A DNA stretch of 64,000 bases from Isurus oxyrinchus (Eukaryota): assembly GCA_026770705.1 (NCBI GenBank), contig JANJGN010000008.1, forward strand, positions 13,640,001 through 13,704,000, given 5' to 3'. The notes below the pieces were generated by a model, which saw only the letters and a list, made by a program, of their open reading frames with translations, made no database searches and was not told where the DNA came from. Within the stretch, counting starts at the first letter, position 1. Every line of letters starts with the position of its first letter. Below, piece after piece: positions 19,951 to 63,027 of the stretch. The translations under genes and the position numbers were made by a program.

Positions 19951-22635
19951 CAAAGAGGAGGAGGTGTTGCATTATTAGTTAAAGAGTCAGTTACTGCAGT
20001 ATGGAGACATGATATCTTGGAGGGGGCATCGAATGAAGCTTTGTGGGTAGAGCTTAGGAATAAAAAAGGGGGAACCACATTATTAGGTGTTTATTATTGA
20101 CCCCCAGATAGTCAGTGGGAAATTGAGGAGCAAATGTGTGCACAATTTGTGGAAGTGTGTAAAACAATAATAATAGGGTAATTATAGCAGGTGATTTCAA
20201 CTTTCCCAGCATTAATTGGGATAGACATAGTGTTACGGGCTTGGATGGAGTGGATTTCTTGAAATGTGTACAGGAGAACTTTTTAGGTCAATATGTAGAG
20301 GGTCCTTCAAGGGACGGTGCATTGCTGGACCTAATTCTGGGGAATGAAGCCGGACAGGTGGCTGAGGTGGTGGGGAGCATTTTAGCGATAGTGACCACAA
20401 CATGGTACAGTTGAAGTTTGTTATGGACAAAGAAATCAACAAGTTGCAAAAAAATGTTTTTGATTGGGGGTGAGTGGATTGTAGTAAAATAAGGCAGGAT
20501 CTGGCCAAGGTAGACTGGAAACAGTTACTTGTGGGGAAATCTACAGAGGAACAGTGGGGGGTGTTCAAAAAGGAAATGGGGAGGGTACAGGCTCAACATG
20601 TTCCTTCTAGGGTGATAGGAAGGAGTAACAAGCCCAGAGAACCATGGATGACCAGAGGTATTCAAGTTAAGATGAGAAGGAAAAGAGAGGCTTTTAGCAA
20701 GTACAAGGGAAGCAAATCAGCAGAGGCATTAGTGGAGTACAGACAGTGCAGGGTGGAGCTTAAGAAAGCAATTAGGAGAGCAAAGAGGGGATATGAGAAA
20801 GCTCTGGCTGGTAAAAGTAGGGAAAATCCCAAGATATTCTATAAGTATATCAATGAGAAGAGGATAACCAGGGAAAGAGTAGGGCCCATAAGTGTCCAAG
20901 GGGGCAATCTATGGGTGGAACCAGTGAATGAATACTTCACGTCCGTCTTCACCCAAGAGAATGAGGATGAAGTTATCGAACTCGGGGAGAGAGACTGCGA
21001 GGTTCTTAAGCAAATTGATATAGGGAGTGACAAGGTATTGGAGGTGTTGGCAGGCTTAAAAGTGCACAAATCTGCAGGTCCGGATGATCTGTGTCCCAGA
21101 CTGCTGAGGGAGGCAAGGGAGGAGATCGCAGGGGCTCTGACCCAAATTTTTAATTCCTCTCCAGCTACAGGGGAGGTGCCAGAAGACTGGAGAACAGCTA
21201 ATGTGGTTCAGCTATTTAAGAAGGGTTGTAGAGATAAGCCAGGGAACTACAGACCCGTTGGTCTCACGTCAGTGGTAGGGAAACTATTGGAGAAATTTCT
21301 GAAGGAGAGAATCTATCTCCACTTGGAGAGGCAAGGTTTGATCAGGGATAGTCAGCATGGCTTTGTCAGAGGGAGGTCATGCCTAACAAATTTGATTGAA
21401 TTTTTTGAGGAGGTGACCAGGTGTGTAGATGAGGGTAGTGCAGTTGATGTAGTTTATATGGATTTTAGCAAAGCCTTTGACAAGGTCCCACATGGGAGAC
21501 TTATAAAGAAGGCAAATGCACACAGGACACAGGGTAATTTGATAAGGTGGATTCAAAATTGGCTTAGTTGTAGGAGGCAGAGGGTGATGACAGATGCTTT
21601 AGTGATTGGAAGCCAGCATCCAGTGGCGTACCACAGGGATCTGTGCTCAGTCCCCTATTATTTGTCATTGACCTAAATGACCTAGATGACTATGTGGGGG
21701 GGTAGGATTAGTAAGTTTGTGGATGACACAAAGATTGGCTGGGTGGTTAACAGTGAGATTGAGTATCTTGGGAAGATACAGGAAGATATAGAAGTGATGG
21801 TCAAATGGGCAGATAAGTGACAGATGGAATTTAACCCTGAAAAGTGTGAGGCGATACACTTTGGAAGGAGTAATTTGACAAGGAAGTATTCAATGAACAT
21901 CATGGCACTAGGAAGTTCTGAGGAACAAAGGGACCTTGGCGTGTGTATCCATAGATCTCTGAAGGCAGAGGGGCATGTTAGTGGGGTGGTGAAAAAGGCA
22001 TCTGGGATACTTGCCTTTATCAATCGAGGTATAGTTTACAAAAGTATGGAGGTCATGATGGAGCTGTATAGAACCTTGGTGAGGCCACAGCTGGAGTACT
22101 GTGTGCAGTTCTGGTCGCCACATTATAGGAAGGATGCGATTGCACTGGAGGGGGTGCAGAGGAGATTCACCAGGATGTTGCCTAGGATGAAACATTTAAG
22201 TTATGAAGAGAGGTTGGATAGACTTGGGTTGTTTCGCTAGAGCAGAGAAGACTGAGGGGAGACCTGATCGATGTGTCCAAGATTATGAGAGGCATGGACA
22301 GGGTGAATAGGGAGCAGCTGTTCCCCTTAGTTGAAGGGTCAGTCACAAGGGGACATAAGTTCAAGGTGAGGGGCAGGAGGTTTAGGGGGGAATGTGAGGA
22401 AAAATCTTTTGCCCAGAGGGTGGTGATGGTCTGGAATGCACTGCCTGGGAGGGTGGTGGAGGCGGGTTGCCTCACATCCTTTAAAAAGTACCTGGATGAG
22501 CACTTGGCACGTCATAACATTCAAGGCTATGGGCCAAGTGCTGGTAAATGGGGTTAGGTAGGTAGGTCAGGTATTTCTCATGTGTTGTTGCAGACTCAAT
22601 GGGCCGAAGGGCCTCTTCTGCACTCTGTGATTCTG
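19951..22635 (+). mobile_element. 5'-truncated CR1-clade LINE ORF2 (APE C-terminus, RT), inactivated
   Basis: 400-aa ORF 20474-21676 with PEDWRTANV, GNYRPV, QHGF, YMDFSKAFDKVPH; frameshifts downstream; 6-bp TSD TGAATG at 19945-19950 and 22636-22641. Confidence 0.9.
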
Positions 22636-25055: not shown

Positions 25056-25966
25056 ATCACCCCCAATTAACATAACGACGATGAGCCTAAAGGTTATCTT
25101 CTGACTCATCATCCTATAGCTCCCCGCACCCCCCCCTCCCTGAACTCTGCTGCCCCAACTCTGGCCTGTTGTGCATCCCCATTGTACCTAGTGTCAGCCC
25201 TGGCTCAACGGCTAGTGCTATCAACTCTGAGACAACAACCTTACAGATTCAAGTCTCACTCCAGAGACTAGAGCCCGTAGTCTACGCTGAAACTCCCAGT
25301 GCCATTACTGAGGGAGTGCTGCATTGTTGGGCATACTGCCGTTTATGTGAGATGTTAAACTGAGGCTGTGTTTGCCACCTCAGGAGGATGTAAAAGATCC
25401 CTTGGTACTATTTTGCAGGGGAGTCTCGCCAGCGTTCTGGCCAATATTTGTGCCTCAGTCAAGATCACAAAAAAAAACCCAGATTACCTGGCCGTTATCA
25501 CACCGCTGCTTGCGGAATCTTGCTGTGTGCGAACTGGCTGCTGCGTTTAGCCTCCTGTGCTGTGTAATTCTATGATTAGAGATTAGCCCTTTAACACTGG
25601 TGCAGTGCTGCAGCACACGCTGTACGAGTTCTTGGAATCCCACAGAGCCTCTCTGAGAATGAGTGGCTGACTTATATAGGGAAGTGCAAGCCATAATCTG
25701 GGTTTTACGCTAATCGTTTCTGCTCTGCAATTGGTGATAATGAGCACCACCAGCAGAGGACGCTGAGGCACATAGAACTGGAAGACAGACAAGGCAAATA
25801 AACAGGGCAGGAAATACAATTCAGGTTGATGGGAGAATTGCCCTGTTTTTAAACATTTACAGATGCCACAGATTTAGGAAACATTTGTCCCACGAGAGAG
25901 GGTGCGAAAGGTGTCTGTGTGCTGTCAGCACATCATCACCCAATCCACAAAACACACACTAGATCT

Positions 25967-26037
25967 CTGATTGGCTGTCGTGTGACTCGCCAGTTGCCAG
26001 GGAGAGGTCTCCGCTTGAGACTGCGTTTTCCAGAGTC
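25967..26037 (-). promoter_or_regulatory. S-X-Y-like module A
   Basis: Minus: CAGTCT-16bp-CCTGGCAACTGGCG-AGTCA...AGCCAATCAG. Confidence 0.6.
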
Positions 26038-27770
26038 TGGTGGCAGAAGGTAAATAAAATTCCTGCTGCCCTTTCAAACCACAATCCGGAAATCTCGGAG
26101 CATAATGTCTCGGCTGACACTCCCAGTGCAGTGTGGGAGGAGTGCTGCAGTGCCGGGGCTGCTGGCTCTCGGTTGAGATGTTAAACCAGGGCCCGCCTGT
26201 CCTCTCAGGTGAATCTGAAAGATCCCGTGCACCGTTTCAAAGACCGGGGGAGTTCTCCCTGTTGTCCTGTGATCACTACCACCTAGAAGGACAAGGGCAG
26301 CAGACAGATGGGAACACCACCGCCTGCAAGTTCCCCTCCAAGCCACTCACCATCCTGACTTGGAAATACATCGCCGTTCCTTCACTGTCGCTGGGTCAAA
26401 ATCCTGGAACTCCCTCACTAACAGCACCGTGTGGGTGTACCTACACCGCATGGTCTGCAGCGGTTCAAGAAGGCAGCTCACCACCACCTTCTGGAGGGCA
26501 ATTAGGGACGAGCAACAAATTCTGGGCTAGCCAGCGAAGCTCACACCCCATGAAATAATTTAAAAAATCCTTCAACCACGAACACTAAAATCAGCTTATC
26601 TGGTCGTTATCACTTTGCTGTTTATGGGAGCTTGCTGTGTGCAAATTGGCTGCTGCATTTCCTATATTACAACAGTGACTACACTTCAAAGGGCAATTCA
26701 CCATCAAGTGAGTTGGGACACCATTAGGTGGTGAAAGGCACTATATAAATGCAAGTTCTTTATTTCATATACCATCACTGAAGAATGATTGAAATGTGAA
26801 ATGCTCTGAAATATTTTGACACATTCAGACGGCATATAAATAGAGGCATTGTGAGTTCACCACAGTCGGGGATTGGATCATTAGATGGTAATAAACGTCT
26901 TGTTTTAAACACGTTTTCTCCCTGTACAATGCTCCCCCGGTCAGCTTCCCATCAACCGCCACCTGTGGTCTTGAGATCAGTCAAAACTCTGCTGCCTGTA
27001 TCCTAACTCAAACCAAACTGTGTTCACCTCACCCCCTCCCTATCTCTGCAACCTCCTCCAACCCTATATCCCCCGGAGACATCAATGCCTCTCCCATTCC
27101 GGCTTCTCATCCATCCCTGATTTTAATTACTTCACCACACCATTGCCTTTATTTTCCCAAAAAATATACTTTATTGATAAGTTCGTAGAAGTACATTCAA
27201 TGACAGTTCAAAGTTGACATTACATAAGGTGCGAACCAAATCAGTTTCTTCCAATACTGTATGTTACTCAAAACATTTAAAATTACAGTTAATGTTTACC
27301 CTACTCATTACTTGTCGAACATTCAGCCCGTGGGGGTTTTTCACAGTTTCCACCCACTGGGTGCACCACATCTGAAGGGCCTTTCCCCACTAAGCCATTG
27401 CAGCAGCTGCCCCAAGCTTGAGTGGGTCTCTCATTTACCCCACCACACGATAGTCAGCCACGTCTTCAGCTGCCTGGGCCAGAAGGTCTGGAACTCCCTC
27501 CCTAACCTTCTCCGTTTCTCCCTCTCTTCCTTTAAGATGCTCCTTAAAACCTATCTCTTCAACCGAGCTCTTGGTCACCTGCCCTAATATCTTTTTATCG
27601 CTATCGTATTTTGCCTTATCATGTCCTTGTGAAGCAGATTGGGATGTGGCATTGTGTTAAAGATAATATAGGAATACAAGTTGTCTTTTGGTTATGGCTG
27701 CAGTGCCTCCAGCTACAGACAGATGGCACCAACATCAAACCCTGGAATCTCAAACCCCCAGTGGTCAACA

Positions 27771-27842
27771 CTGATTGGCTATTGTGTCAGTTGCTAGTTG
27801 CCGGGTAGAAGTCTCTGCTTGAAGTTGTGCTTTATAGAATCA
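27771..27842 (-). promoter_or_regulatory. S-X-Y-like module B
   Basis: Minus: CAACTT-16bp-CCCGGCAACTAGCA...AGCCAATCAG; X2 degenerate. Confidence 0.55.
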
Positions 27843-28969
27843 GGCGACAGAAACTAAGCCAACATAGAATCATAGAATGGTTACAGCACAGAAGGAGGCC
27901 ATTCAGCCTATTGTGCCCGTGTCAGTTCCCTATAAGAGCTACTCACTCACACAACCCCTTCCTCAACTTTTCCCTCCGACCCTGCAATTTTGTTTTGACT
28001 GCAGATAATTAGTGCAAAATATCTCCTTCGTTTGCCAACCCCACAACAATCACTGCACTTCAAAGCAATTAATTCTAAGTGCTGCACTTTGGATTGTAAA
28101 AAATATAAGCCTCTCTCACATTGCGCTTTGAAGATATCAATGGAAAGTATTTTCCGAAGTTATCCAATTATCCATTTCTATCATGTTGGTTCTAACAGAT
28201 GGAGAAGCTAATACCCAGCTAACTCCCAATACTCAACGAAATAATTGAAGGCAACTTCTTTTGCAGTAATGAAGCATAAAGCTGACCTTGTCACAGCAAC
28301 TGTGTGGGTGATTAGTATAACTCCTGTCTGCTTGAACAAATTGAAAGTGTCACGCAGCATTATCGAAAACAAGCAAACGGAAGGAGCCACACAAACAGGC
28401 AAAGGAGCGCTGCCTGTTGCATTTCCAATCAGAAAGATTTCAAATATTGTTTCATATCATTTCATCGTTCTTCTACGTTATTGCTGATAACGTATTCTGT
28501 ACATTTCGATTTTCAGGCCAGTGTTTCAAGAATTGTTTGTACATGTACCATGTGGGTGTACAGCAAGCGTGATTCTTTTTCTGAAAGACGTACACTTGCA
28601 AATTCACAATATAGATGGTTTTATGTTTGACGGAATGCCTGTGGTGTGTTGGAAATAGAAATCTCTGTACTTTTCTGCCCGGGCTTGGATTGGTTCTGGA
28701 TCGGCTCTGAGTTATTAGTGAAGCGAAAGGAAAAGAATCTCTGGATGCCCAGCTCTTTGTCAGCACTCTCCACCCCTCCAAGGGCTTTTGATTTGTCACA
28801 TTGCTTATCCGACACCCAGTACCGGATGAGCAGAAATTTCCTCCAATTAAATATTGGGAAGACCGAAGCCACTATTTGCAGCCCCCACTCCAAACTCTGT
28901 TCCCTAGCTACAGGCATCAGTTCCATATTCTCCCTGGTAACCGACTGATGGTGAACCTGACAGTTTGCA

Positions 28970-29820
28970 CCGTTCAAGGGCCCAAACACTCCTTTCAAGT
29001 GAAGCAGCATTTCACTTGCATTTCCCCCAACTTAGTCTACTGCATTCGTTGCTCCCAATGCGGTCTCCTCTACATTGGAGAGACCAAACGTAAACTGGGC
29101 GACCGCTTTGCAGAACACCTGCGGTCTGTCCGCAAGAATGACCCAAACCTCCCTGTCGCTTGCCATTTTAACACTCCACCCTGCTCTCTTGCCCACATGT
29201 CTGTCCTTGGCTTACTGCATTGTTCCAGTGAAGCCCAACGCAAACTGGAGGAACAGCACCTCATCTTCCGACTAGGCACCTTACAGCCTTCCGGACTGAA
29301 TATTGAATTCAATAACTTTAGGTCGTGAGCTCCCTCCCCCATCCCCACCCCCTTTCTGTTTCCCCCTTTTTCCTTTTTTTTTCCCTATAAATTTATAGAT
29401 TTTTCTTTTCCCACCTATTTCCATTATTTTTAAATATTTTAAAATCTTTTATGCTCCCTCCACCCCCACTAGAGCTGTACCTTGAGTGCCCTACCATCCA
29501 TTCTTAATTAGCACATTCGTTTAGATAATATCACCAACTTTAACTTTAACACCTATGTATTCTATTGTACCATTGTCGCTGACATCTTTTGATGATCTGC
29601 TTCTATCACTGCTTGTTTGTCTACACAAGCACCTCTGTCTCTCTCTCTCTCTCCGCCCCCCCACACACACACCTTAAACCAGCTTACATTTCAACTCTTT
29701 CTTGGACTCGAAATCAAGTTCTGTCGAAGGGTCATGAGGACTCGAAACGTCAACTCTTTTCTTCTCCGCCGATGCTGCCAGACCTGCTGAGTTTTTCCAG
29801 GTAATTCTGTTTTTGTTTTG
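28970..29820 (+). mobile_element. Penelope-like element 3' fragment (GIY-YIG) with 13-bp TSD
   Basis: HFTC...NLVYCIRCSQCGLLYIGETKRKLGDRFAEH...GLN; CTGACAGTTTGCA at 28957-28969 and 29821-29833; hammerhead-like motif 29717-29755. Confidence 0.9.
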
Positions 29821-30541
29821 CTGACAGTTTGCAACCTTGACGCCATATCTGACGCTGAGATGAGTTTCTAACTCATAGTTGCACCATGACCAAAGCCGCC
29901 CCTTTTCGCCTCTGTAACATTGCCTGACTCTGCCTCTGCTTCAGCTCTTCTGCTACTGAAACCCCCACTCACACCTTCAGGTTTAACTATTCCAAAGCAT
30001 TCCTGGCCAGCCTCCCAGGTCCTCCGCAAGTTTGAGTTCACTCGAACCTCTTCTACCTGTCTCCCTAACTCGCAGCAAGTCCCGTTCACCCATCATCCCC
30101 TTCTGCTCACTGTCTCTGGGTCCAGCAATGCCTCAATTTTAAATGAGTTTAAATCCCTCCATGGCCTCTCTGTAATCTCCTCCAGCCCCACCACCGTCTG
30201 AGATACCTGGCTTCTTGACCATCCCCGATTTTAATCGCTCCACCGTCGACAGCCGTGCCTTTGGTTGCCTAGACTCGAAACTCTGAAATTGCTAAAACTC
30301 TCCAACCCTCTATTTCCCTCTCCTCCTTTAGGGCACTCCTTAAATCTTCTTTGAGCATCTTTTGGCCAACTCTATCGCTGTCATGTTTTGTTTGACCACG
30401 TTCTTGTGAAGCAGATTGGGATATGTTACTGTGTGAAAGATGCTGCAGAAATGGAAGTTGTTGTGTGGCTGCAGTGCCTCCAGCTACCGACAGATGGCAC
30501 CAACACCCGATCCTAAAAACACAAACCCCAAATGGTCAACA

Positions 30542-30613
30542 CTGATTGGCTATTGCGTGACTCGCTAGTTGCCGGGTAGAGGTCCCTGCTTGAGGTTGTG
30601 TTTTATAGAAATC
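30542..30613 (-). promoter_or_regulatory. S-X-Y-like module C
   Basis: Minus: CAACCT-16bp-CCCGGCAACTAGCG-AGTCA...AGCCAATCAG. Confidence 0.65.
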
Positions 30614-33600
30614 AAGTGACAGAAACCAAACCAACAATTCCACACGAAAGCTGAAGACGCCCACTTCCTCCTCAGCACCCTTGACCCCTCCGAAGCCTTT
30701 GATTTGTCACCTTGCTTACCCGACGTCCAGTACCGGATGAGAAGAAATTTCCTCTGATTAAGTATTAGGAAGACCAAAGCCGTGGTTTCCCATCTCTTGC
30801 TCGCTGACAACCGTGTAAAACTCCTCCAAACTGTTCGCAACCTTGGTGTCATAATTGACCCCAAGATGAGGCCCTGACCAAATATCCACACCATCTCTTA
30901 AGACAGCCGACTCCCGCCTCTATAGTAACACCCAACCTTACCCCCACCTCATCTTATTTGCTGGGAACCCCCGTCCATGGCTTTGTTCCTCTACAGCTGG
31001 TTATTCCAATGCATTCCAACACCTCCTACCCCTGAGAGCATCCAAATCTCTGCTGCCCTTGTCCTAACCCGCACCGAGTCCTGTTCACCCGTCACCCCTG
31101 TGCTCGCTGACTTGCATTGGCTCCCAGTCAAGCCAGACCTTGGTTTGAAAATTCTCATCCTTGTTTCCAAATCCCTCTGTGGCCTCGTCCCTCACTATCT
31201 CTGTAATCTCCTCCAGCCCTCCAACCCTCTGAGATATCTGCACTCCTTTAACTCTGCCCTCTTGTGTGTAATCATCAATTTGAACCGCTCCACCATTGGC
31301 GTCTGTGTCTTGTTGTCTCTCTCGCTTACCTTCCCCCTTATAACCTACCTCTTTGACCAAGCTTTTGTCATCTCCTTGTGTGGTCATCGCTTGTTTGATG
31401 AGGCTCCTGTGAAGTGCCTCGGGGGTGGGGGGGGGGGATTTACCACATTGAAGGTGCCACGCAAATGCAAGTTGTTGTTGTAACAGTGGCCACCTTTTTT
31501 TTCACAAAACAGCGTTTTTTTTAAAAAATTAAACCATTCATAGCAAACCACTGCGGGACACCGTGTGGATCTGAAACTTGGGAAGGACGTAAGTTCCTCT
31601 TTCGGTGCTGGAAGGCGCTGACTCCGTGTTGGGGGGTGTGATCCCAAGAATGTTGAACCCCCACTTCTACCTCGAGTCATATGTTCATGTTTCTGGTGTG
31701 TGGCTGGGGGGTGGGGGGGGGAGGGGGGGAGGTGGCAGTGAGTTTTCACCAACTCTTTCCACTTGAGGCTAATTGCCCCCTCTTTGGTGACACTCACTAG
31801 CGATGGAGAACATGCCAGACCCAGAGCAATGCCCTCCGTGCCACACTGCCCAGCTGGACTTTAGCCGCTCGAGAAGCTGGTTCAACTTCTCAAGGGCAAT
31901 TCGGAGCGGGCAACAAATGCTGCCCTCGCCAGCGTCGTCCACACCCCATGAAAGAAGAAGATAAGAAGGAGCATGGCTGATTTTCGTAAATCTCCTGCTC
32001 CCCCCTTCCCCCACACTCCCACCGTGACAGCTCACTGAACGGCAATAGCAAGCTGTTCGACCGTGGTGTTTGGTGCCTGGTGTTTCCCCCAAACTGGCGC
32101 TCAAAAGTAGGACCTTTGGCTGTGCTGCGCTCCAACGCTTTCCTGGTTGAGCTCAGCTAAGTCAGCACAGACCAGGGGGCCAAACAGAATGAACCCGTAA
32201 CCCCACAGTGACCTTCACAACCTCAGGATGCCCCAGCGACTGATACAGCCGGTGAAGCACCCTTTAAAAGGGTGAGCCCTGTTGTTAGGTAGGAAACACA
32301 ACCAATTTGCGCACAGCAAGACCCCACAAGCTGCTGAATGACCAGATATCTGTTTCAGTGATTTCAGGTTGAGGGATACCAGACAAAACCACCCCCTACC
32401 CCCCCCCCCCTCCCCCCCTCCACTCCCCGCCCTTCCTTGTAATCACGCCGTGGGATCTTTTACATCCACTTGAGAGGGCCAACAGGGCCGCAGCTTATCA
32501 TCTCACTTGGAAGACGGCACCTCTGACAATGCGGCACTCCCTTGCTACCACGCTGGGAGGGTCATGCTCGAATGTGTGCTCAAGTTCCTGGAGTGGGAGC
32601 TGAAACTACGACCATCTAACACAGAGACGAAAGAGAGTGTCACCCACTGAGTCACAACCAGCAACAAAGATATGGAAACCCCTGTACAGTTCACTGCCAC
32701 ACTGGAGACTGCGTTGCTGTTCACTAAGGCTTGAGTATCCAAGGGTGCAGGTGTCACTGGCAAGGCCCCAGCATTTGTTGCCCATCCCTAAATGCCCTTG
32801 AACTGAGTGGATGACTAGGCCATAGAGTCAACCACGTTGCTATGGGTCTGGAGTCACACATAGGCCAGACTGGATAAGGATGGCAGATTCCCTTAGCACA
32901 TCCTGAGGTTCCTTGGCCAGCACAGACACAATGGGCCAAAGGGCCTGTTTCTGTGCTGTATAACACATCGTGAACCAGTTGGGTTTTTAGGCCAATCAAT
33001 AATAGTTTCATGGTCACCATAACTGAGACTGGATTTATATTCCCGATTTAACTAATTGAATTTAGATTCCACCAACTGCTGTGGTGGGATTTGAACCCAT
33101 GGCTTCAGCGTTACTAGTCCAGTTGACATTACCACGACCCCCCACCCTCTGTAATGGAGGCATTTAGGATGATTAAAGGATTTGTGAAGGTAGATAAAGA
33201 GAAACAATTTTCTCTGTGTTGGGGGGAGTACAGACCAAGGGAGCAAAGCCTCAAGATCAGAGACTGCTCAGGGGTGATATCAAGAAGCATTCCCTCACAC
33301 AACGGGCTGTTGAGGTTGGTTGTCACATGAAAATTTCAAATCTGACTTTGAGAGAGTTTTGTGGGTAAGGGTATTAAGGGTGACAGGTGTGTAAATGGAA
33401 TTAAGACTCAGATAAGCCTCGATCCAATTGAATGGTGCGATAGGCTGAAAGGGGCTGAATAGCCTCCTGTTCCTATAAGCGACAGCTTCCAGGCTGTTTT
33501 ACTAAACAACAGGCAATGGATAAGAGATAAACTCAGAGCCAAGTTAGCAGCACACATCCAGACCATGGAGGTTAACTTGGTTCCCGTGCAATGTTGCAGT

Positions 33601-33657
33601 TTCACTTCTACGCTGCCAGAAACCAATATTGAGGACAGGTATCCCAACAGGAGAATA

Positions 33658-33729
33658 TCTATTGGCTGCTCAGTGACTCACTAGTTGTCAGGGAAAGGTT
33701 TCCAGCTGAGACTGTGTTTTATAGAGTCA
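33658..33729 (-). promoter_or_regulatory. S-X-Y-like module D
   Basis: Minus: CAGTCT-16bp-CCTGACAACTAG-TGAGTCA...AGCCAATAG. Confidence 0.6.
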
Positions 33730-33789
33730 CTTGTCAATGAGCCAGAACTCATGTCCTCCGTATTGTGCAGATTATGTGTCAACACAGCA

Positions 33790-34385
33790 GTTTGTGGCTT
33801 CAATCCCACGCCAGAGACTTGAGCTCATAATCTAGGGCTAACACTCACAGTGCAGGACTGAGGGAGTGCTGTACTGTCAAAGGGACAGAACTGAGGGAGT
33901 GCTGCACTGTCAGAGGGGCAGTACTGAGGGAGTGCTGCACTGTCAGAGGGGCAGTACTGAGGGAGTGCTGCACTGTCAGAGGGTCAGTACTGAGGGAGTG
34001 CTGCACTGTCAGAGGGGCAGCACTGAGGAAATGCTGCACTGTTGGAGGTGCTGTCTTTTGCATGAGTCATTAAACCGAGGCCCCAGTTGCCCTCTCAGGT
34101 GGAAGTATGAGACTCCATGCCACCATTCGAGGAACGGCGATTGTGGGGGGGGGGGGTTCTGCCCAGTGTTCTGGGGCCAATATGTTTCCCTTATGCTACA
34201 TCACCAAAACAGATTATTTGGACATTATCACGTTGCTGTTTGTGGGATCTTGGTGTGCACAAATTGGCTGTCGTGATTCCTACATTGCAACAGTGACTAC
34301 ACTTCAAATGTACTTCATTGGCTGGGAAACACTTCTGCACTCCCCTGAGGATGTGAAAGGCACTATAAAAATGCAAGTTTTGTTT
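33790..34385 (+). mobile_element. DeuSINE (SacSINE1/AmnSINE1-like) with internal tandem expansion
   Basis: Deu-type domain TTGCTGTTTGTGGGATCTTG...CAAATTGGCTG...GTGACTACACTTCAAA; relatives at ~25195-25550, 26570-26765, 32200-32660(-), 37080-37370(-), 52590-52930. Confidence 0.65.
33851..34050 (+). repeat. 33-bp tandem repeat, ~6 copies (ACTGAGGGAGTGCTGCACTGTCAGAGGGGCAGT)
   Basis: Directly visible; gives the 11-aa periodicity in overlapping spurious ORFs. Confidence 0.95.
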
Positions 34386-35734
34386 CCATTGGAAACATTC
34401 AAAGGCCCACGGATCATTGGACTGTAGTATCTGTGCAGTAAGGGAGCTGGTGGTGTAGAGCTATTGTCACTGGACGAGTATTCCAGAGACCAGGGTAACA
34501 TTGTGGGGACGCAGATTCAAATCCCAGTAGATGGTGAAATTTTAATTCAATAAAAGTCTGATGATGACCATGAAACCATCGCTGATTGTTATAAAAAAAA
34601 ACCCATCTGGCTCACAAATATCCCTTTAGGGAAGGAAATCTGCCCTCCCTTACCTGGTCTGGGCCTACACGTGACTCCAGACCCACAGCCTATGTGGCTG
34701 ACTCTTAACTCCTCTCGAAAACGCCTCACAAGCCACTCAGTTCTCGAGGGCAATTTCTGCCGGCCTAACCAGTGACCTCCCCGTCCCATCAGTGAATAAA
34801 AAAAAAAATACTCAGCTGGGTCTCTCTGTGTCCAGCAGCAATCACCCCCTGATTCCCATTCTCCAGGAGGCTGCTTCGAAGAGAGTGAATAACCCTTTGG
34901 CGTAATTCGGATTGGGATTAGGGGTGTGAAGGATGAAGGGCCCCTTTCATGTTGCAAGGCCGGCAGATTCGATTCCTCCGCAACGGATAGTGCGGGCTCG
35001 TGTTTTCCATTTGTTTAAAATTCCGGACCCTGTGCCTCGGGATCGTTCCCTGGTGGGGGGGGAATCCCCCATGGACAAAATCCGCCCTGGAGCAGCTCGT
35101 CCACCTGCGCACCCCCCCCCCTCCCCTCCCGGACGCTATTGAGCGAGCCCTAGTTGGGAGTGAGCCGCTCACTTTGCGCTGGGGTTAGCCGCAGTGGCTG
35201 GGGTGGTGGGGGGTGAAGGTGGGGGTGGGTGCTGGGGGGAGGGGTGCAAGGTAGGGGTGGTGAATCCTCTTTAGGATCAGGAGGAACATGAGGGCAAGTG
35301 GAGACCCTTCCAACCTTTGACTCTCGACTGCCTCTCAATGTTACCCCAAATCGCAGCTCGGTACCCTTCCCTCCCTCCCTCCCTCCCTCCCTCCCTCCCA
35401 CATTGGCCAAATCTTGAGGTTAGCAGCCCTCCCTCCAATTAGCCAATCGGTGCCCTGCTGCTGGTAAGACTTGTCAGCCATTGGATGAGGCGGAAAAAAA
35501 TCTCTTCATTATTGTTTGCCTGTTCTCAAATCCTCGAAGGCACCTCTAAAAGCCCCAGTACTTTTTTCAGAAACAAACACAGTGAAAACGCAATCATCGA
35601 GGTGGGGCTGGGGGACGGGGGGTGTTGGGGGGGGGTTGGTGGGTGGGGGAGGGAGTGGGGAGGGTGGGAGAGGGGAGGGGGGGCAGAGGCAGGAGAAGAA
35701 TGAAACCGCAACAGCAAAACCATCAAAGAAACCA

Positions 35735-35810
35735 CTGGTCAGCCATCAGTGTGTGAGTCACTAGTTACCAAGGAAAGGTTGCACGTTGAGGCTGAGTTTT
35801 TGGAGCGTCA
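35735..35810 (-). promoter_or_regulatory. S-X-(Y)-like module E, Y box degenerate
   Basis: Minus: CAGCCT-16bp-CTTGGTAACTAG-TGACTCA; the CCAAT position is replaced by a diverged sequence. Confidence 0.5.
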
Positions 35811-37844
35811 CGTGCCAATTAACAGTTCGGCACTGGTTCCAACAATCACCAAATCGTTAAAGCACAGGAGGAGGCCATTCGGATGAGCAGCTCACCTAAT
35901 GCCATTTCCCCAGCTTTTCCCCATAACCCTGCACCTTCTTCCTTTTCGGATAACAGCCTAATTCCCTTTTGAATGCTTCAGTTGAACATCCGCCGCCCCC
36001 CACCTCCCCCCCACCCCCACTCTCAGCCTGTGCATTCCAGAATTTAACCACTCGCTGCTTGAAAAAAGATTTTCCTCAGGTCACTGTTCCTCCTTTCACC
36101 AACTGCATTAAACCTGTGCCCTCTCGTTCGCGATCCCTTCACAGGCGGAGGCTGTGTTTTCTAGTTCTATAGAATCATAGGTTGGTTACAGAACAGAAGG
36201 AGGCCATTCAGCCTATGCTGCCCACACTGGCCCGCAAGAGCAACTCGCCTTGCCCCCACTCCTCTAGAGAGAAAATTAGTTTTTGAGCACTCGCTGCATA
36301 AAAAGATTTTCCTCATGTCACTGTTGTTTCTTTTGCCAATCACTTGAAGTCAGTGTCCCCTGGTTCTTGACTATTCCACCAATGGGAACAGTTTCTCCCT
36401 ATTAGTCTGTTCAGGTCCTACATGATTTGGAACACCTCTATCAAATCCCTTCTTAGTCTCCTCCACTTGCCTGGATGAGTGCAGCTCCAACAACACTCAA
36501 GAAGCTCGACACCACGCAGGACAAAGCAGCCCCGCTTGATTGGCATCCCATCCACAGACATTCACTCCCTCTACCACCGACATATAGTGACAGCAGTGTG
36601 TGTACCATCTACAAGATGCACTGCAGGGATTCACCAAGGCTACTTCGACAGCACCTTCCAAACCCACGACTGCTACCGTCTAGAAGGACAAGGGCAGCAG
36701 ATACATGGGAATACCACCACCTGGAAGTTCCCCTCCAAGTCACTCACCATCCTGACTTGGAAATATATCGGCATTCTTTCACTGTCGCCGTGTCAAAATC
36801 CTGGAACTCCCTTCCTAACATGGGCGTACCTACACCACATGGACTGCAGCTGTTCAAGAAGGCAGCTCACCACCACCTTCTCAAGGGTAATTGGGATGGG
36901 TAATAAATGCTGGCCTTGCCAGTGAGGCCCACATCCCATAAATTAATATAAAAAGAGTCCCAGTTTCTTCAATCTATCCACATAACTGAAGTTCTTATAT
37001 TGTAACTGATTAGTCTGCAGTCACATAGAATTCCATCACATGTACAGCAGGAAAACAGGCCACTTGGCCCAACTGGTCTAAAGAAAGACCTGCATTTATA
37101 TAGTGCTTTTCACAACCACCAGATGTGCCAAAGCGCTTTGCAGCCAATGAAGTACTTTTGAAATGTAGTCACTGTAGGAAATGTGGCAGTCAAATTGTGC
37201 ACAGCAAGCTCCCACCAACAACGACCTGATCATTACTGGATATTCTGCGTTTTGGTGATGTAGATTGAAGGATAAATGTTGGCCGGGGGGGGGGAGGAAA
37301 TCGCCCCTACTCTCCTTTGAAACAGTGCCATGGGATCTTTTACATCTACCTGAGAGGGCAGATGCCAGTTCTACATCGGTCTATGCCAGTCTGTGCTCCG
37401 CATAAGCCTTCCCCCAACCCTGCTCACCTAACCTCATACACAATATCTTCATCCCTGTCTCCCTCATGTGTTCATCTAGCTTCCCTTTAAATGCACTGAT
37501 GCAATTCACCACAACTATTCCTTGCGGCAGCGAGTTCCACGTTCTAGCTAATCTTGCACCCAGTTTTGTGAGCCTTGCTTTATTTAGGGAAGTAAACAAA
37601 GCAATGGAGAGGGTGTAGGAGGAATTCAACAACAACTTGCACTTATGAAGCACCTTTAAAGTAGTAAAAACGTCCCAAGGTAATTCAAAGGAGTGTTATC
37701 AGGCAGAATATGAGGCGATATTGTCAGGAGACCTTGGGGAGAAGGGGCCCACAAAGTGGTCCAAAGATTTTAAGGAGCGTCTTAAAGGAGGGGTGTGAGG
37801 TGGTGGTGGTGGGGGAAGGTTTAAGGAGGGAATTTTTGGAGAGG

Positions 37845-46846: not shown

Positions 46847-49206
46847 GGGCAGAATTTTCCGTGCCAGCCGGCAGCACGGACAATATGGTATGATCTGTTT
46901 CCTGACGGCAGGAAGGAAGGTCATGTTCGTCCGCTCAGCCTGCTGTGGTGGACCACATTTCCCGCTGAGGGTTGTTGGGGAGCTCATTGCAATACAGCAG
47001 TATATCATTCAAAGGCCATCTCGCCAGGCTCTTGGACCCCACCCCCCGCCCCCCCACCCCCCCCCCCCCCCCCCCACCGCCCGCCGCCCGCCGGACTGTA
47101 TGTCGACGTGTTTCACAAGACACGGGCGATGTGCACTTGGCAGCCTTCACTTTGGGGGAAACTGAGGTGATTGAGCAGCAACGCCCTGCAGATCTCGCCG
47201 GGGTTGCCCGTTGGCTTTGCAGGCTTCAGGAGCGCAGGGGGTCCGGGCTGAAGTGCCGCTCTGCCACGGAGGCAACGGTTGTTGGGGGGGGTGGTAGGGT
47301 GTCCTGGGGCCACTGCTGCCCAGCCTCAGAAGTGACTGTTGTCAGGGGTATCGGGGAGGGGGGGGGGCAACTGCTGCCCTGGCATTGGACCCCGCACACA
47401 AGAAATCGAGGAGGGGGGGCAGGGTAGTGAGGGAAGTGGCCTATGCGGAAGGGGCACCTGTATAAACTGACCATTCCACTGCAACTGAGACAGATCAGGC
47501 GCAGCCACAGTGATGTGATTGGGGTCGGGCTCCTAGCCTGCCCACCCATGTAAGCAACATGGAGGCACCAAAAGGCCACCAAGTGCTCCAGACTCTACCC
47601 CCACCCCACCCCACCCCCCGCAGTCACACAGACTGCAAGTCCGTGACCACTTTATTGAACTGCGGAGCAGTTGGACTGCACACGGTGTACAATCTCCTCG
47701 CCAACGCTGGCCATGGAGCAGTCACTGCTGGAGGTGCTCACAGCCCCTTCCAATCTCAGCATCCTGGTTTGGATCAGTGTCCCCCATGTCACAGGTTGAC
47801 AGGGCAGCCATTCAGCGCACTCATCCCTGGCCATCCACAGGGGTGACCAGCGCTCTCTGCGTCGTGTTAAGGGGCAGTCACACAGGGTCAGGAAAGGTGC
47901 TAAGTACACCCATGATAGCCACGTCTCTCTCTATCTTTCATGCTGCAGGAGGACCACCTCAGGATCATGGATCCTGGAGACCTAGCTGTATGCCTGATGG
48001 CCTACAGAGACCATAGAAGGCGGAGGAGAGAGTGACTGAGGTTCCTGGCTGCGCAGAGACAGGGGCAGTAACCTCATGAAGAAGGGGCAGCAGGAGCTCC
48101 CACACACACTACCCAGGAGCGACTGTGAGCCGTGGCTGGTCAGTGCCTAGTGACACCCGGGGTCTATAGACACCGCCTGCCATTCCTGCAGATGACTGAG
48201 AACCAGTGTCGCCAATGACTGCACATGTCTAGGGACCTGGTAGCTCACATCTGCCACTTCCTGCAGGACTTGGTGCCAAGGGGACATGGAGGGCATCCAC
48301 TGCCAGTGGCTGTGAAAGTGACCGTGATGCTCAATTTCTATACCAGTGGCTCCTTTCAGGGCTCCACAGGTGACCTCTGTGGGATTTCACAATCCACCAC
48401 CCACAATTGTATCCATGAGGTCACAGATGTCACCTTCTCCATGGCAACAACTTTGTGCATTTCACCCAGGACCAGGACAGCCAGGATGCCAGGGCCATTG
48501 GATTGTCCCTGATCTCGGGATTCCCACAGGTGCAGGGTGTGATTGACTGCATTCATGTGGTGCTCAGGTCTCCTTCGCTACACTCGGTGGACTTCATCAA
48601 CCACAAGGGCTTCCACTCACTGAACGTGCAGCTGGTGAGCGACCACCAGAAACGCTCGCCCCGCACGGATAGAGATGGAGAGAGTGTAAGCAGGATGCCT
48701 GTTGGGCCAGATGATAAGTATACCTGGCCTGTGCGGGTGGTGAGTGGTCCCATGGACAGGATCAGGACAATGACGGTGAGTGCAAGAGAGTGAATGGTGC
48801 TGTCCCTTGAACCGGGAGTGAGTGAGGGCCCTGTGGGTGTGTGCCGGGTTTGTGAGTGTATGAGCTGGGAGCAATGAGAAGAGTGACCTACCCTGGCGGT
48901 GCAGAGGGGATCACTCATCCTCTTGCGGCACTGGGCGGCTGCCCTCTTCTGAAGGGCGTTGCCGCGGACCACCGCCTCCCCAAGCCGGATTGGTCAAATG
49001 GCCTGCCCGTCCCTGTGAGGGGACAGGACATCCCGGTGGGGGGCCTCCACGGCATCCGGCAGTCGCTCGAGGGACCCTTCACTGAGAGCCCGCCCGGCCT
49101 GGAAACGGGGTCTTTCCTGGGAACGCGCGTGGCGGGCTGGGGACAGTACGGCGTGAAAACCCACCACCGCTACCACGGTTGGTGCAAATTTGGGGAACTT
49201 CCACCC
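46847..49206. mobile_element. PIF/Harbinger DNA transposon remnant (transposase +, Myb/SANT-like gene -)
   Basis: +: [47 protein letters not shown]; -: SLERLPDAVEA...RAAAQCRKRMSD; TIR-like GGGCAGAATTTTCC / GGGAACTTCCACCC. Confidence 0.8.
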
Positions 49207-51585: not shown

Positions 51586-51897
51586 TCAATGTTGCCAAGG
51601 AGTTGCTGTGGTTTTCTTCATTTCTGTTGTGTGCACCTGGGAGAATGGGTTTGGGCCCTCGGGCTTAACAGCTCATCTGGAAGATGGCACCTCCGACAGT
51701 GCAGCACTCCCTCAATACCGCACAGGGGTGGTGTCAGCATGTGGATTATGTGCTCAAGCTCCTGAATTGAAATTTGAACCCTCTCACTGCTGACCAGAGG
51801 CAAGAGAGAGAGAGAGGGCTGCCTGCCAAGCTAGGGATGTTCAATTGCTCTGGGTGCTTATATTTGAAAATCGGCTCATGTTCAGTTAAGTACGGTA

Positions 51898-51962
51898 GGG
51901 ACTTTCCAAGCTAGTCTCTGCTAACTTCCTCTTCGGCAGTGGCTGAGAGTGAATAAAAAAAA
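51898..51962 (+). promoter_or_regulatory. CD74 proximal promoter: NF-kB site, PU.1/ETS site, A-rich TATA-like element
   Basis: GGGACTTTCC 51898-51907 (canonical kB); AACTTCCTCTT 51923-51933 (reverse complement AAGAGGAAGTT); AATAAAAA from 51952. Confidence 0.7.
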
Positions 51963-52068
51963 ACCTCAGTCAGACTGTGCACAGACTCCTGCCTTCTGCA
52001 CCAGAGTGAACAGTCTTCAGTGCAGAGTGCTGCAAACCAGTGGAATTTGTGCGGACAAAGGCTCCAGA

Positions 52069-52169
52069 ATGTCAGTCGACGAACAGCAGAACTCTTTGCT
52101 GAATAACTCACAGCAGAATTTGATCAGTAATTCCAATGTGGAAGCCAGGACCACCGTTACGGGGCAGAG
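52069..52169 (+). CDS. CD74: MHC class II invariant chain, coding exon 1 (cytoplasmic tail)
   Basis: MSVDEQQNSLLNNSQQNLISNSNVEARTTVTGQ resembles mammalian MDDQRDLISN; donor AG|GTAAGA, phase 2, in frame with exon 2. Confidence 0.85.
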
Positions 52170-53414
52170 GTAAGATCAGCGCTCCAGCGATTCTTATTTT
52201 AAAATTCGTGCCGGTAAAGAAGTAAAAAGGCTTTTTCACCCTGTCAACAATTGAGTGGGTCTTTGCTGGCTGTTAGAAGATTGGAGTCTGTGAGGGTCCT
52301 GAGGATGTTACAGGGTAAGATTCTGCCACATCGTGTCAGGAATGATCTTTCTCCTTAACGCATTCTTGGGGCGTAAGGCATCGCAGGCTGGGCCAGCATT
52401 CATTGCCCATTCCTATCTGCCCCTCGAGAAGGCGGTGGTGAGCTGCCTTCTTGAACCGCTACAGCCCAAGTGGTGTATGTGGCACCCACAGCACTGTTAG
52501 GGAGGGAATTCCAGGATTTTGACCCGGCGGCAGTGAAGGAACGGCCAAAGTATTTCCAAGTCAGGATGGTGTGTTCTGCTCGGAAGATATAGTCACCAAG
52601 AATGTCTGCCCTCTCGGGTAGATGTAAAAGGTACATGTCCGGGCACCCATCAAAGAGGAACAGGGGAATTCTCCCCAGTGTCCTGAGCAATATTTATCCC
52701 TCAATCAACATCACACACACACATACACACACACACACACACACATCAAAAAACAACCTGGACGTTATTACATTACTGCTTGTGGGATCTTGCTGTGCCC
52801 AACTTAGTGGGTGCGTTCCCCACGTTACAACAGTTACTGTACTTGGAAAGTGCTTCATTTTCAGTAAAGCACTTACGGACAAACTGGGATCATGAAAAGA
52901 GCCACAGGAATGCACAACCCCTCTTTGTCTATAATTCTTGCACCCTTTGTATCAAAGTGCTCTCGAAATCAGTAAAGGTGTGTGCCAGGTTCTGGGAAAA
53001 AAAGGTGGCTCGGTGGCCACTGAGAGTCTTTATGCAATACGACCCATTCTACCTGTTTAAAGTTAGAAGATGGAACTTAACGGCAGGTCGATCAGAATCT
53101 GAAAAGCGTAAAGTGGAATCTGAGCTCAAAAGGTTTTTTTTTTGCTTGCTTTTTGAAGATTTGAGCATTTTTTTTTTCTTTTGTTTTAAATTTTGGAGTC
53201 TTCTGTGCCCCAGCCTCTCTGCTTTCAGATCTTTGTCTGTTCCTTAGATCTCCATCCTCTTTCCCTTTTGTACAACATCAAACCAGCAATGTTGAAAAGA
53301 AAGTTCTACTTATGTCTTGGCCAACCACCTCCCTGCCACTCAATTTTATGGTTTGCAAGTTTAAGCAGGATGTTCAACTTCACACACAAGCACTCGGACC
53401 ACACAGACTCAGAT

Positions 53415-53449
<35 letters not shown>

Positions 53450-53684
53450 CACAATCCCTCCACCAGAGGTCACTGATGAGCTGTGAGGACCTGCTTATGC
53501 CTGTTCTAACCTGTTTAACCAGGCTGATCTTATTGATCTGAGAACATCTTCATTTCCTCAAACATACCCCCTTCCTCTTGACCCCCAGAGATGTATTTTT
53601 CGCTTGTGACCCGGGGCAGTGAGTGTCAATACCAAAAATGGGGCACTGCAAAGTGAATTCAGTGCTGCGCTCACCTAATTTACA

Positions 53685-54170
53685 CAAGCACACAGACATA
53701 CACACTCACAGACCCACAAGATGGACACACACACACTCACAGACCACACACATGGACACGCACACACGCACAGACCACACACAGATGGACACGCACACAC
53801 GCACAGACCACACACAGATGGACACACACACACTCACAGACCACACACATGGACACGCACACACGCACAGACCACACACAGATGGACACGCACACACTCA
53901 CAGACCCAAACACCCAGACACACATACACGTACAGAACCACACAAATGGACAGGTGCACTTGTATGCACATACAGGCACACATATACACATATGGCACAG
54001 ACAACCACATACATGGGCACATGCACGTCGTTGACACGCACATAGACACACATACACACATACACACACACAGACAAATACACACATACGCACACACGTG
54101 TACACACAGACACAAAACGCCCACACATAAAGCACATACAGACACATAGACATACATGCACACACACAAA
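53685..54170. repeat. CA-rich cryptic microsatellite/minisatellite
   Basis: Units like CAGACCACACACAGATGGACACGCACACACGCA; explains the His/Thr and Cys/Val ORFs. Confidence 0.9.
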
Positions 54171-61528: not shown

Positions 61529-61707
61529 CAGCAGGAAATGCTCTCGAAGCCTCCTTTGGGGTGGAGTGACTGTGTTGGCGGCCATGCTCATTGCTGGGCA
61601 AGTTGTCAGCGTCATGTTCTTGCTGAAGCAACAGGACAAGATAACGGACCTGCAGAAGACAACTGATCGAATCGAAAACAAGTACTCATCAAGCCGGAGC
61701 CCAGTCA
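61529..61707 (+). CDS. CD74: MHC class II invariant chain, coding exon 2 (type II TM anchor)
   Basis: SRKCSRSLLWGGVTVLAAMLIAGQVVSVMFLLKQQDKITDLQ aligns with human [40 protein letters not shown]; donor GTACGT at 61708 (alternative GTCAGT at 61704); later exons lie beyond the window. Confidence 0.92.
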
Positions 61708-63027
61708 GTACGTACATCTTCCTCCCTTTCGGTTCAATTGTTTTGATTAAAGCCCAAATAAATCTGAGCCCCCTCAAGGCAGAACAATGTAACATCCGCC
61801 AGACAGTGAGTTGATTGAAAGCAAACTGTTGTGTATTTTATATTCCAGAGTTATGCAGAGATGACACTAGTTTCTAAGTGTGCAGCGTATTTGCAGCGTT
61901 TTAGTTAATACTTGAAAATCTCTCTCAGCTCTCGGTTGTGCTAGCTCTTTCTACAGTTTGTTTATTTTCCTCTGAGTCAACACCCAGGCTTAACCAGTCT
62001 AGCACAGTGAGCATCAATAGCAAATAGACGCACATAATCAAACACCGAATAATCGAACACTGCACAAACAAAGTTAGCGACAGTAATCTGATGCGAAGCT
62101 AAATCAAAACCAACCTCTACAACATGAAAGATCCCCAAGTTTGATTTAAAAAAGAACCCTCCAGGTGCGTTCTTGGGGAACATCCCTTTATGGTGTGTAC
62201 AGTTAACTGGAGAGACCAGGGAAGCCGGGGAGTTGTTCACCTTAGAGCAGAGAATGTTAAGAAGAGATTTAACGGAGGCGCCCAAAATTATGACTGGTTT
62301 TGATAGAGAAAGTCGGAGAAATTGTTTCTTTGGAAAGTGCTTTGTTGTCACATAGTTACCCAGTAGGTACAGCACAGAAACAGGCCATTCAGCCCAAAGG
62401 CTCCCTGCTGATGTATGTGCTGTACACAAGCCTCCTCACACCATTCTTCATCCAGCCACATCAACATATCCTTCCATTTCTTTCGCCCTCATGTGCTTAT
62501 CTAATTTTCCCTTAAATGCATCTATGCTATCACTCCACATAGTATTGAGCTCCACATTCGCTCTTCTCCCTGGGTCAGGAATGGTCTCCTGACTTCTCTA
62601 TTGGCTTTAATAGTGACTTTCTTATATTTATGACACCCAGTTTTACTGGCAAGTAGAACCAATGATGCCTACCCTATCAACACTTTCGTAATCTTAAATG
62701 GCTCTATCAGGTGACCCCACAGCTTTCCCAGTCTGGTAACCAACAGGTTTAAAACAATTGGCAAAATAACCAGAGAGAAGATAAGGTGCAAATGTTTCAC
62801 ACTTTTAAGGCACAGCAGATGGTAAATGCTGAGCTGCTCAAATCCTAGAAGGAAACTTGAAACAGCTGCCACAGCTGTTTTGCAATTTGTATTTTGATTT
62901 CGAGATGTGTGCCCTTAAATTCAGTGGTAATAAATCCACTGAGTCTTAAAGAGTTTTTTTTTTACAAAACTAAAACATTTATTAATAAAAGAAATATTTT
63001 TTAGGCAAATACATAAGTCTATAAATT

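Follow-up and report, generated by a model that had tools for sequence, protein, structure and literature searches.

Does the SXY module, through which mammals control MHC class II and invariant-chain genes, have a counterpart at the CD74 locus of a shark? In mammals this module is the textbook example of a rigid enhanceosome: it is bound by RFX5-RFXAP-RFXANK, CREB/ATF and NF-Y, and recruits CIITA. To our knowledge, what has been learned about SXY modules is almost wholly mammalian. A reading of 64 kb of Isurus oxyrinchus DNA (the window), made from the sequence only, had proposed that an array of SXY-like blocks upstream of CD74 forms a distal control region. We followed up this proposal computationally, asking how many blocks there are, what they contain, how they have diverged and which gene they might serve.

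Five co-oriented blocks lie between RPS14 and CD74

The setting of all five blocks is the RPS14–CD74 intergenic region, which is packed with transposable elements (TEs) and, judged from read depth, is ~80–90% repetitive. CD74 was found where the sequence-only reading had implied. The coding part of exon 1 (cytoplasmic tail; 52069..52169, plus strand) opens with an ATG at 52069, is followed by a GT donor at 52170, and is 63% identical to the N-terminal part of P0001, a full-length homologue (E 3e-10). The transmembrane and CLIP region is encoded by exon 2 (61529..61708, plus strand), which matches the Pfam family MHC2-interact (E 6e-15). A representative-protein search with the exon-2 open reading frame (ORF) returned three homologues, and a separate homologous-protein search with the same ORF gave no match; each exon was searched on its own. 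These exon positions place the blocks 16.2–26.0 kb upstream of the likely CD74 start site, a distance that may be due largely to TEs that built up between the two genes at a later time. CD74 is the only non-housekeeping gene within their reach.

Repeat finding, blastn and nhmmer together confirmed the five homologous, co-oriented blocks reported at 25967, 27771, 30542, 33658 and 35735 (modules A to E). The repeat search recovered an 87-nt family with four copies (25967, 27771, 30542 and 33658; spacings of 1804, 2771 and 3116) that are 67–74% identical, and blastn tied the fifth copy (35753–35819) to module D with 76% identity over 67 nt. Searching the 64 kb with an nhmmer profile of the five cores gave exactly these five matches (E 5e-17 to 4e-21), each on the minus strand, and no further copy in the window, the next match having E=0.24. 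All five copies fall within 10 kb and share one orientation, whereas true TE families are scattered across the window.

The modules combine X1, X2 and CCAAT motifs at fixed distances

Read on the minus strand, the order within a block is a pyrimidine tract, an RFX-type X1 (RGYAAC), 3 nt, an AP-1/CRE-like heptamer, 8 nt and CCAAT. The pyrimidine tract is of the CCTYTCC type and lies 5' of X1 in all five modules. X1 reads GGCAAC in A, B and C, GGTAAC in E and GACAAC (one mismatch) in D. The X2 heptamer is CGAGTCA in A and C, TGAGTCA in D and TGACTCA in E, and starts 3 nt after the AAC in all four; in B it is degenerate, as had been claimed, and reads CAACTGA. CCAAT is read on the S-to-X strand; it sits 8 nt past X2 and is invariant in A–D (100% among A, C and D). 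A position-fixed S-like hexamer, CA(R)(Y)(Y)T, is 78–81% conserved; judged against the DRA sequence, it resembles the mammalian S box weakly. The proposed geometry held: in A–D the distance from the start of ATTGG to the X-box GTT is 23 nt, and in 5/5 modules the end of the S hexamer lies 16 nt ahead of X1. From X1 start to Y end the module measures 32 nt, and from S to Y 54 nt. The claim that every block carries an X2-like element and a CCAAT stood for X2 in A, C, D and E and for CCAAT in A–D, but not for the Y box of E.

Only A, C and D have the full S-X1-X2-Y set. Module A (25965..26037, minus strand) reads CAGTCT ... CCTGGCAAC TGG CGAGTCA ... CCAAT. Module C (30540..30612, minus strand) is complete, with the TATA-like TCTATAAAAC upstream, and module D (33656..33728, minus strand) joins the consensus TGAGTCA and CCAAT to its mismatched X1. 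Module B (27769..27841, minus strand) keeps S, X1 (CCCGGCAAC) and CCAAT intact beside its degenerate X2. Module E (35736..35808, minus strand) keeps S, X1 and X2 intact and has lost the Y box, with a 3-nt insertion and CTGAC replacing CCAAT. A CACGTG E-box is found just upstream of module E. The TATA-like segment is conserved in B, C and D (87% among A, C and D) and degenerate in A (TCTGGAAAAC).

Pattern scans showed how specific this arrangement is. The composite RGYAAC-N4-GASTCA-N8-CCAAT, allowing at most one mismatch, matched A, C and D only, against 0.00 matches expected from shuffles. The X1-N3-X2 composite occurs four times in the window, every time inside a module, and an nhmmer profile together with pattern scans found no other X1-X2 composite from RPS14 to CD74 intron 1.

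The CD74 proximal promoter (51898..51963, plus strand) was read directly. It contains a kappaB-like GGGACTTTCC at 51898–51907, an ETS/PU.1-like ACTTCCTC at 51924–51931 and an A-rich TATA-like run at 51952–51963. The X1-X2-Y composite was absent from this promoter and from intron 1 by nhmmer profile and pattern scans, and neither the profile nor IUPAC patterns revealed a sixth module close to CD74. A lone X1-like CCTTGGCAAC lies at ~51591–51602 on the minus strand, without X2 or Y. The idea that the modules are duplicates of the CD74 promoter or exon 1 was rejected, as module flanks had no blastn similarity to 51.5–52.2 kb.

Motifs and spacing are kept among diverged copies

The reading had also inferred that motifs and their spacing were retained while spacers diverged, and comparison of the copies bears this out. 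Identity among A, C and D reaches 93% over the 18 consensus columns that were defined externally, compared with 65% over the remaining 55 columns (p=0.002). With the motifs as defined by the reader, the values are 87% against 52% in spacers (p=0.00025), a contrast that carries some circularity, its motif boundaries having been partly picked from the same alignment, and that the external-consensus test makes less circular. The ~66-nt core of A–D contains zero indels, whereas in the A/C alignment the ~50 nt immediately after CCAAT hold 4 indel events. Homology decays to background within ~20 nt outside the core, and no conserved sequence was found beyond the ~80-nt core among A, C, D and E. The identity of motif columns, together with an indel-free core bordered by indels, points to long-term selection on motifs and spacing. 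Because both were kept while the intervening bases decayed, we conclude that the modules are probably working regulatory elements.

Could the blocks simply be repeats? Raw whole-genome shotgun (WGS) reads were placed at an identity of at least 80%, and depth at this threshold judges modules A and C only. It was 0.44 in the module A bin and 3.1 in the module C bin, compared with 0.8–1.7 in unique flanks and 100 to 45,000 in neighbouring TEs. By this measure neither A nor C is a young high-copy repeat; each is present in one or few copies. Membership in a high-copy repeat, which the reading had named as fatal to its proposal, was thus not seen for A and C by depth, within the scope of at least 80% identity and the 64-kb window. 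A different version of the argument holds that the blocks are old low-identity repeat fragments, or a neutral tandem segmental duplication, with chance likeness to X1, X2 and CCAAT. Read placement at this threshold is blind to members ~70% alike, which is the likeness among the five copies; the region is highly repetitive; and TE 5' ends adjoin modules B (27864) and E (~35840). We nevertheless consider this explanation very unlikely, given one co-oriented cluster with no member elsewhere in the 64 kb, single-copy-level depth, a three-motif composite that chance does not supply, and a motif- and spacing-specific conservation that is unexpected in neutral copies. The SINEs beside A and D, considered as a possible trace of a larger duplication unit, are no more similar to each other than to other members of their family.

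One duplication is younger than the rest. A unit at 30373..30781 (minus strand), which includes module C, is 81–83% identical to 27596–27864 plus 28744–28870, the B copy being interrupted by a ~880-bp TE insertion that begins at 27864; module B is a recent duplicate of module C. The two cores are 83% identical and their flanks 81–83%; in module B, 4 changes fall within 10 nt of X2. In a closely related species, compared over modules A–C, module C is present with 4 substitutions in 87 nt, a divergence no lower than that of its flanks (27 in 517 nt); none falls in CCAAT or GGCAAC, and one converts CGAGTCA to TGAGTCA. The module A bin is covered in the same relative with zero listed differences.

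These data bear on the possibility that an ancestral SXY-type element was duplicated and long selected, and that its copies are now partly or wholly decaying and contribute little to CD74 expression. The altered surroundings of X2 in B, the missing CCAAT of E and the missing TATA-like segment of A would all be expected of such relics, as would a B/C core no more alike than its flanks and a module C that diverges between species at the rate of its flanks. We think this unlikely, while giving it more weight than the repeat explanation: A, C and D retain every motif and the exact spacing despite spacers near 50% diverged, 0/4 changes in module C strike a core motif and one of them improves X2, and the module A bin is without listed differences in the relative.

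No gene or known RNA was found next to the modules

A protein-coding gene beside the modules was considered and rejected: the stop-to-stop ORFs around each module and across 10.5–26 kb either derive from TEs (RVT_1, GIY-YIG) or belong to no family, and neither an ATG-initiated ORF nor a protein family was found beside the modules. There was no Rfam gathering match in the whole window and no tRNA in 24–38 kb. A snRNA-type (PSE-TATA) or other small-RNA promoter was likewise rejected, with no conserved segment beyond the core in A, C, D and E and no Rfam or tRNA match. In two small read runs, guessed to be RNA, depth fell on TEs only, and modules and unique flanks alike were without depth, a pattern that speaks neither for nor against expression.

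These observations also weigh on the idea that each module is a proximal promoter, on the minus or the plus strand, for a lncRNA, an enhancer RNA or an alternative 5' exon. The conservation of TCTATAAAAC in B, C and D would fit such a role. Viewed on the plus strand, the TATA-like TTTTATAG follows CCAAT at ~57 nt, a distance resembling that of classic CCAAT/TATA promoters, and the direction is toward CD74. Viewed on the minus strand, the S-X-Y order is that of MHC promoters, and mammalian S-Y modules normally lie within ~300 bp of the start site (PMC4243378). On that strand, however, the TATA-like element is upstream of S, so that the start site would fall inside the module. Conservation ends with the ~80-nt core among A, C, D and E, no ATG-initiated ORF, protein family, Rfam family or tRNA adjoins, and the RNA-like runs have no depth on the modules (nor on unique flanks). 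We therefore regard a promoter role as quite unlikely, somewhere between the relic and repeat explanations.

A candidate distal enhancer cluster for CD74

An amplified SXY-variant enhancer cluster for CD74 is a plausible interpretation of the array. On balance, we lean toward the view that the five blocks arose long ago by local duplication of one SXY-type module and act as a distal enhancer cluster for this gene. X1, with the pyrimidine tract on its 5' side, would be bound by an RFX-family factor, the heptamer 3 nt further downstream by a bZIP factor (AP-1/CREB/ATF), and the CCAAT 8 nt beyond the heptamer by NF-Y; the S-like element precedes X1 by 16 nt. If the mammalian case is a guide, CIITA would be recruited to the bound complex. 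The five modules would jointly make up a multi-module distal enhancer for CD74, whose proximal promoter has kappaB/ETS-like sites and no SXY. Factor identity, CIITA dependence and CD74 as the target are what we infer here. The proposed S-X-X2-Y identity survives in X1, X2, the 16-nt distance of the S-like hexamer from X1 and the NF-Y site, and does not extend to the canonical Y orientation and spacing or to a promoter-proximal position. That shark CD74 is run by an ancient five-fold array of variant SXY modules, and not by a promoter-proximal SXY box, is a bolder statement that we offer tentatively.

If true, the logic of the CIITA/RFX enhanceosome would be older than the divergence of cartilaginous from bony vertebrates, and its geometry would be looser than the mammal-derived rule of fixed orientation and spacing. 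X1-X2 geometry, S-X distance and the NF-Y site were kept through near-saturating spacer divergence, and Y orientation and phase differ. A cartilaginous-fish CD74 locus with paralogous modules is a natural experiment on the features that an enhanceosome requires. The modules also supply concrete elements for asking if CIITA/RFX control of antigen presentation existed in the jawed-vertebrate ancestor.

Comparison with known SXY and XY modules

The shark modules resemble the MHC class II SXY module in the order of the S-like element, X1, X2 and Y on one strand, the pyrimidine tract 5' of X1, the RGYAAC core, the ~16-nt S-X gap, an optimal NF-Y site (AGCCAATCAG), the association with CD74, and spacers that drift while motifs and spacing are conserved. 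They differ in their Y box, whose orientation relative to X is reversed, as the sequence-only reading held it to be in mammalian CD74. Y lies 8 nt from X2, compared with ~18 nt in HLA-DRA, roughly one helical turn less, and the shark X2 is a TRE consensus (TGAGTCA), not a CRE. The HLA-DRA X box is given as CCTAGCAAC-AGA-TGCGTCA (PMC4806502), the same X1-3 nt-X2 geometry as in the shark, and S-Y enhancers have a pyrimidine tract 5' of X (PMC2278383). Canonical SXY modules are fixed in their order, in their orientation and in their spacing (PMC4243378, PMC1802633), and measure 59–68 bp, with an XY length of 46–50 bp in CIITA-regulated genes (PMC4243378, PMC4381081); the shark S-to-Y span is 54 bp. 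Canonical modules are present once, within ~300 bp of the start, whereas the shark has five copies 16–26 kb away and none proximal. A literature search found no published sequence with the shark X1-X2 strings.

For the human Ii gene, additional S-Y enhancers were reportedly described by Krawczyk et al. in 2004 (cited in PMC1802633). Distal S-Y enhancers, the human Ii gene included, and orientation-independent S-Y activity are documented in PMC1802633. That paper and PMC7041702 present human distal S-Y/XL modules as RFX/CIITA-dependent enhancers that function in either orientation. Those of the DR/DQ super-enhancer (PMC7041702) are, like the shark modules, SXY-like, far from promoters and several per locus. 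Human distal S-Y modules are, however, single, dispersed and of separate origins, whereas the five shark copies are paralogues that form one tandem family. The canonical human modules also retain the usual orientation and spacing of Y, from which the shark modules depart. Non-MHC XY boxes bound by CIITA have non-standard spacer lengths, and X-Y distances among CIITA-regulated genes differ by whole helical turns (PMC4381081). Human genes with short XY lengths (~41–44 bp) bind CIITA and are not rescued by it (PMC4381081); the shark modules would be shorter still than this class. In mammalian XY boxes motifs and spacing have been kept while spacers decayed (PMC4381081), the same pattern as in the shark modules.

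Five related modules on the minus strand

Reading of the minus strand revealed related blocks of ~70–90 nt at five sites, here called modules A to E (starts at 25967, 27771, 30542, 33658 and 35735). A repeat search grouped the first four as an 87-nt family (67–74% identity to its reference), and blastn matched A to C over 127 nt and a fifth block, 35753–35819, to D (76% over 67 nt). Searched against the 64-kb window, a profile of the five cores recovered exactly these five modules, all on the minus strand, and no further match. The five homologous, co-oriented blocks claimed in a sequence-only reading are confirmed. B and C are a younger pair: 27596–27864 matches 30373–30636 at 81% and 28744–28870 matches 30656–30781 at 82%, with B broken at 27864 by an inserted repeat of ~880 bp that includes a Penelope-type GIY-YIG ORF (28801–29325, plus strand).

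Anchored on X1, the alignment is gapless in all five modules from the TATA-like TCTATAAAAC through the X2 heptamer, and A–D keep register as far as CCAAT. On the minus strand the layout comprises TCTATAAAAC (intact in B, C and D, degenerate in A and E), the putative S hexamer CA(R)(Y)(Y)T, 16 nt with a pyrimidine tract at their end, X1 as C(Y)(Y)G(R)(Y)AAC, the X2 heptamer (C/T)GA(G/C)TCA 3 nt further on and, after another 8 nt, CCAAT (inside AGCCAATCAG in A–C). Both spacings proposed earlier proved correct on measurement: S and X are 16 nt apart, and ATTGG starts 23 nt ahead of GTT. The heptamer of B reads CAACTGA; E carries 3 extra nt, and CTGAC replaces CCAAT. The conserved TATA-like element would fit promoters of unannotated transcripts, but no sequence is conserved downstream of the modules, and neither an ORF nor an Rfam family nor supporting reads were found; we consider this explanation improbable.

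A very abundant repeat (start ATAGAATCATAGAA...CAGCACAGAAGGAGGCCATTC) begins at 27864 and ~35840, 7 and ~25 nt past B and E. It is missing from C, the sister copy of B, so the two insertions are independent; they could mark an open-chromatin edge or be coincidence. A SINE lies 44–54 nt beyond A (26107 onward) and D (33788 onward), and a 33-bp tandem array (33852–34042; 5.8 copies, 93% matches) arose from the SINE body near D.

Copy number and evidence of constraint

Same-species raw WGS reads were aligned at an identity of at least 80%, a threshold blind to genome-wide family members only ~70% alike, to 25500–31400 (modules A–C), and depths were summed. Depth was 0.44 in the module A bin and 3.1 in the module C bin, compared with 0.8–1.7 in unique flanks, whereas surrounding transposable elements (TEs) reached hundreds to ~45,000; the modules are thus not a young high-copy element. 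The depth of 17 in the module B bin is uninformative, since high-copy bins adjoin it on both sides. The presence of five co-oriented copies in 10 kb and none in the other 54 kb indicates local duplication.

Constraint was assessed on A, C and D, the complete and mutually distant copies. Their identity was 93% in 18 columns taken from external consensuses (RGYAAC, TGASTCA, CCAAT) versus 65% in the remaining 55 columns of the core (p=0.002 by permutation), and 87% versus 52% when motif and spacer columns followed the sequence-only reading (p=0.00025). About half of the spacer positions differ, which is near saturation, so the duplications are old. No indel was found in the ~66-nt core of A–D, yet in the A/C alignment indels occurred four times within ~50 nt directly after CCAAT and once just 5' of the TATA-like segment, and gapless identity is at background within ~20 nt outside the core. 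Neutral copies would not retain motifs and spacing while their spacers vary freely, and gene conversion would make the spacers uniform too. The XY boxes of mammalian MHC-II genes show the same pattern (PMC4381081). An old repeat resembling X1, X2 and CCAAT by chance is unlikely given a three-motif composite expectation of 0.00, single-copy depth and conservation specific to the motifs.

Contigs of a close relative, a second species sharing ~39% of sampled words and 2–5% different in clean pieces, cover module C. Three of the four changes in C (30542, 30556, 30564, 30588) occupy spacer or flank positions, and the fourth turns CGAGTCA into the consensus heptamer TGAGTCA. With 4 changes in 87 nt versus 27 in 517 nt of flanks, C is not more conserved than its surroundings; the comparison is underpowered and its weight neutral. 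The module A bin has single-copy depth in this species and no differences listed, a missing row not being proof of identity. A coral metatranscriptome run also shared ~5% of sampled words of a 10-kb stretch, likely through common or contaminating repeat sequence.

The modules may instead form a relic array, kept by past selection and little used at present. The lack of X2 in B and of Y in E and the ordinary recent divergence of C favor this account, which we regard as plausible but doubtful. Long selection after duplication is nonetheless required, under the relic account as well.

Genomic setting

The modules lie between RPS14 (~5.2–10.7 kb, plus strand) and CD74, in a 41-kb interval full of LINE/RT, Penelope and SINE fragments. 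TE remnants include a 400-aa LINE reverse-transcriptase ORF (20474–21673, plus) and ORFs resembling, by eye, Harbinger/PIF transposase (48219–48790, plus). A 28-residue RPS14 exon peptide is encoded at both 6617 and 7753 (plus), ~1.1 kb apart, either as a duplicated exon or as an in-gene pseudo-exon.

CD74 exons were searched one by one, never joined, and lie in plus orientation. Exon 1 (ATG 52069, donor 52170) and the N-terminus of a full-length homologue of 325 aa share 63% identity; exon 2 begins at 61529 and gave a hit to Pfam MHC2-interact (E 6e-15). This position places the modules 16.2–26.0 kb upstream, their S-to-Y reading opposing CD74 transcription. Much of the 9.3-kb intron 1 is taken up (53300–54250, 57600–60650) by long CA/TG-rich microsatellite tracts and by a minisatellite; units of the latter give ORFs of the 'VTTVTITPCYH' type, repeated on the two strands.

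Just upstream of the 5' UTR, the proximal promoter (51898–51963, plus) carries a perfect kappaB-type GGGACTTTCC, an ETS/PU.1-like ACTTCCTC and an A-rich TATA-like run; profile and pattern scans found no X1-X2-Y composite or SXY module there. A lone X1-like CCTTGGCAAC (51591–51602, minus), ~370 bp further upstream and without X2 or Y, probably lies in a repeat.

Comparison with the SXY enhanceosome

SXY modules keep S, X, X2 and Y in a set order, with set orientation and spacing, span 59–68 bp, mostly no more than 300 bp from the start site, and carry a pyrimidine tract 5' of X and an inverted CCAAT as Y box (PMC7866136, PMC4243378, PMC1802633, PMC2278383). Common to the shark modules and this definition are the element order (a putative S followed by X1, X2 and Y), a pyrimidine tract, the distance from the S-like hexamer to X and the X1–X2 geometry, the last illustrated by CCTGACAAC-TAG-TGAGTCA in D and CCTAGCAAC-AGA-TGCGTCA in the HLA-DRA X box (PMC4806502). 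However, their CCAAT stands on the S-to-X strand and thus runs opposite to the canonical Y box, a real departure from SXY, and they span 54 bp rather than 59–68. The CCAAT is 8 nt from X2, whereas this distance is ~18 nt in HLA-DRA, making the shark spacing about one helical turn shorter. X–Y distances in CIITA-regulated genes vary by whole helical turns (PMC4381081), so there is no clear reason to expect a one-turn change to be disabling. S-Y enhancers are known from distal positions, some of them in the human Ii gene, and S-Y activity has been described as independent of orientation (PMC1802633); how far the modules lie from CD74 and which way they face thus raise no objection.

The proposal of a distal S-X-Y control region for CD74 is partly supported, by the distance from the S-like hexamer to X, the X1–X2 geometry, local duplication and constraint; Y orientation and spacing differ from those of the canonical module. 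On sequence grounds, we think it somewhat probable, and the most likely reading, that the array consists of amplified SXY-type modules of variant form, a cluster of candidate enhancers serving CD74, with a bearing on comparative immunology and enhanceosome mechanics. We class them as SXY-like variants that fall outside the canonical group.
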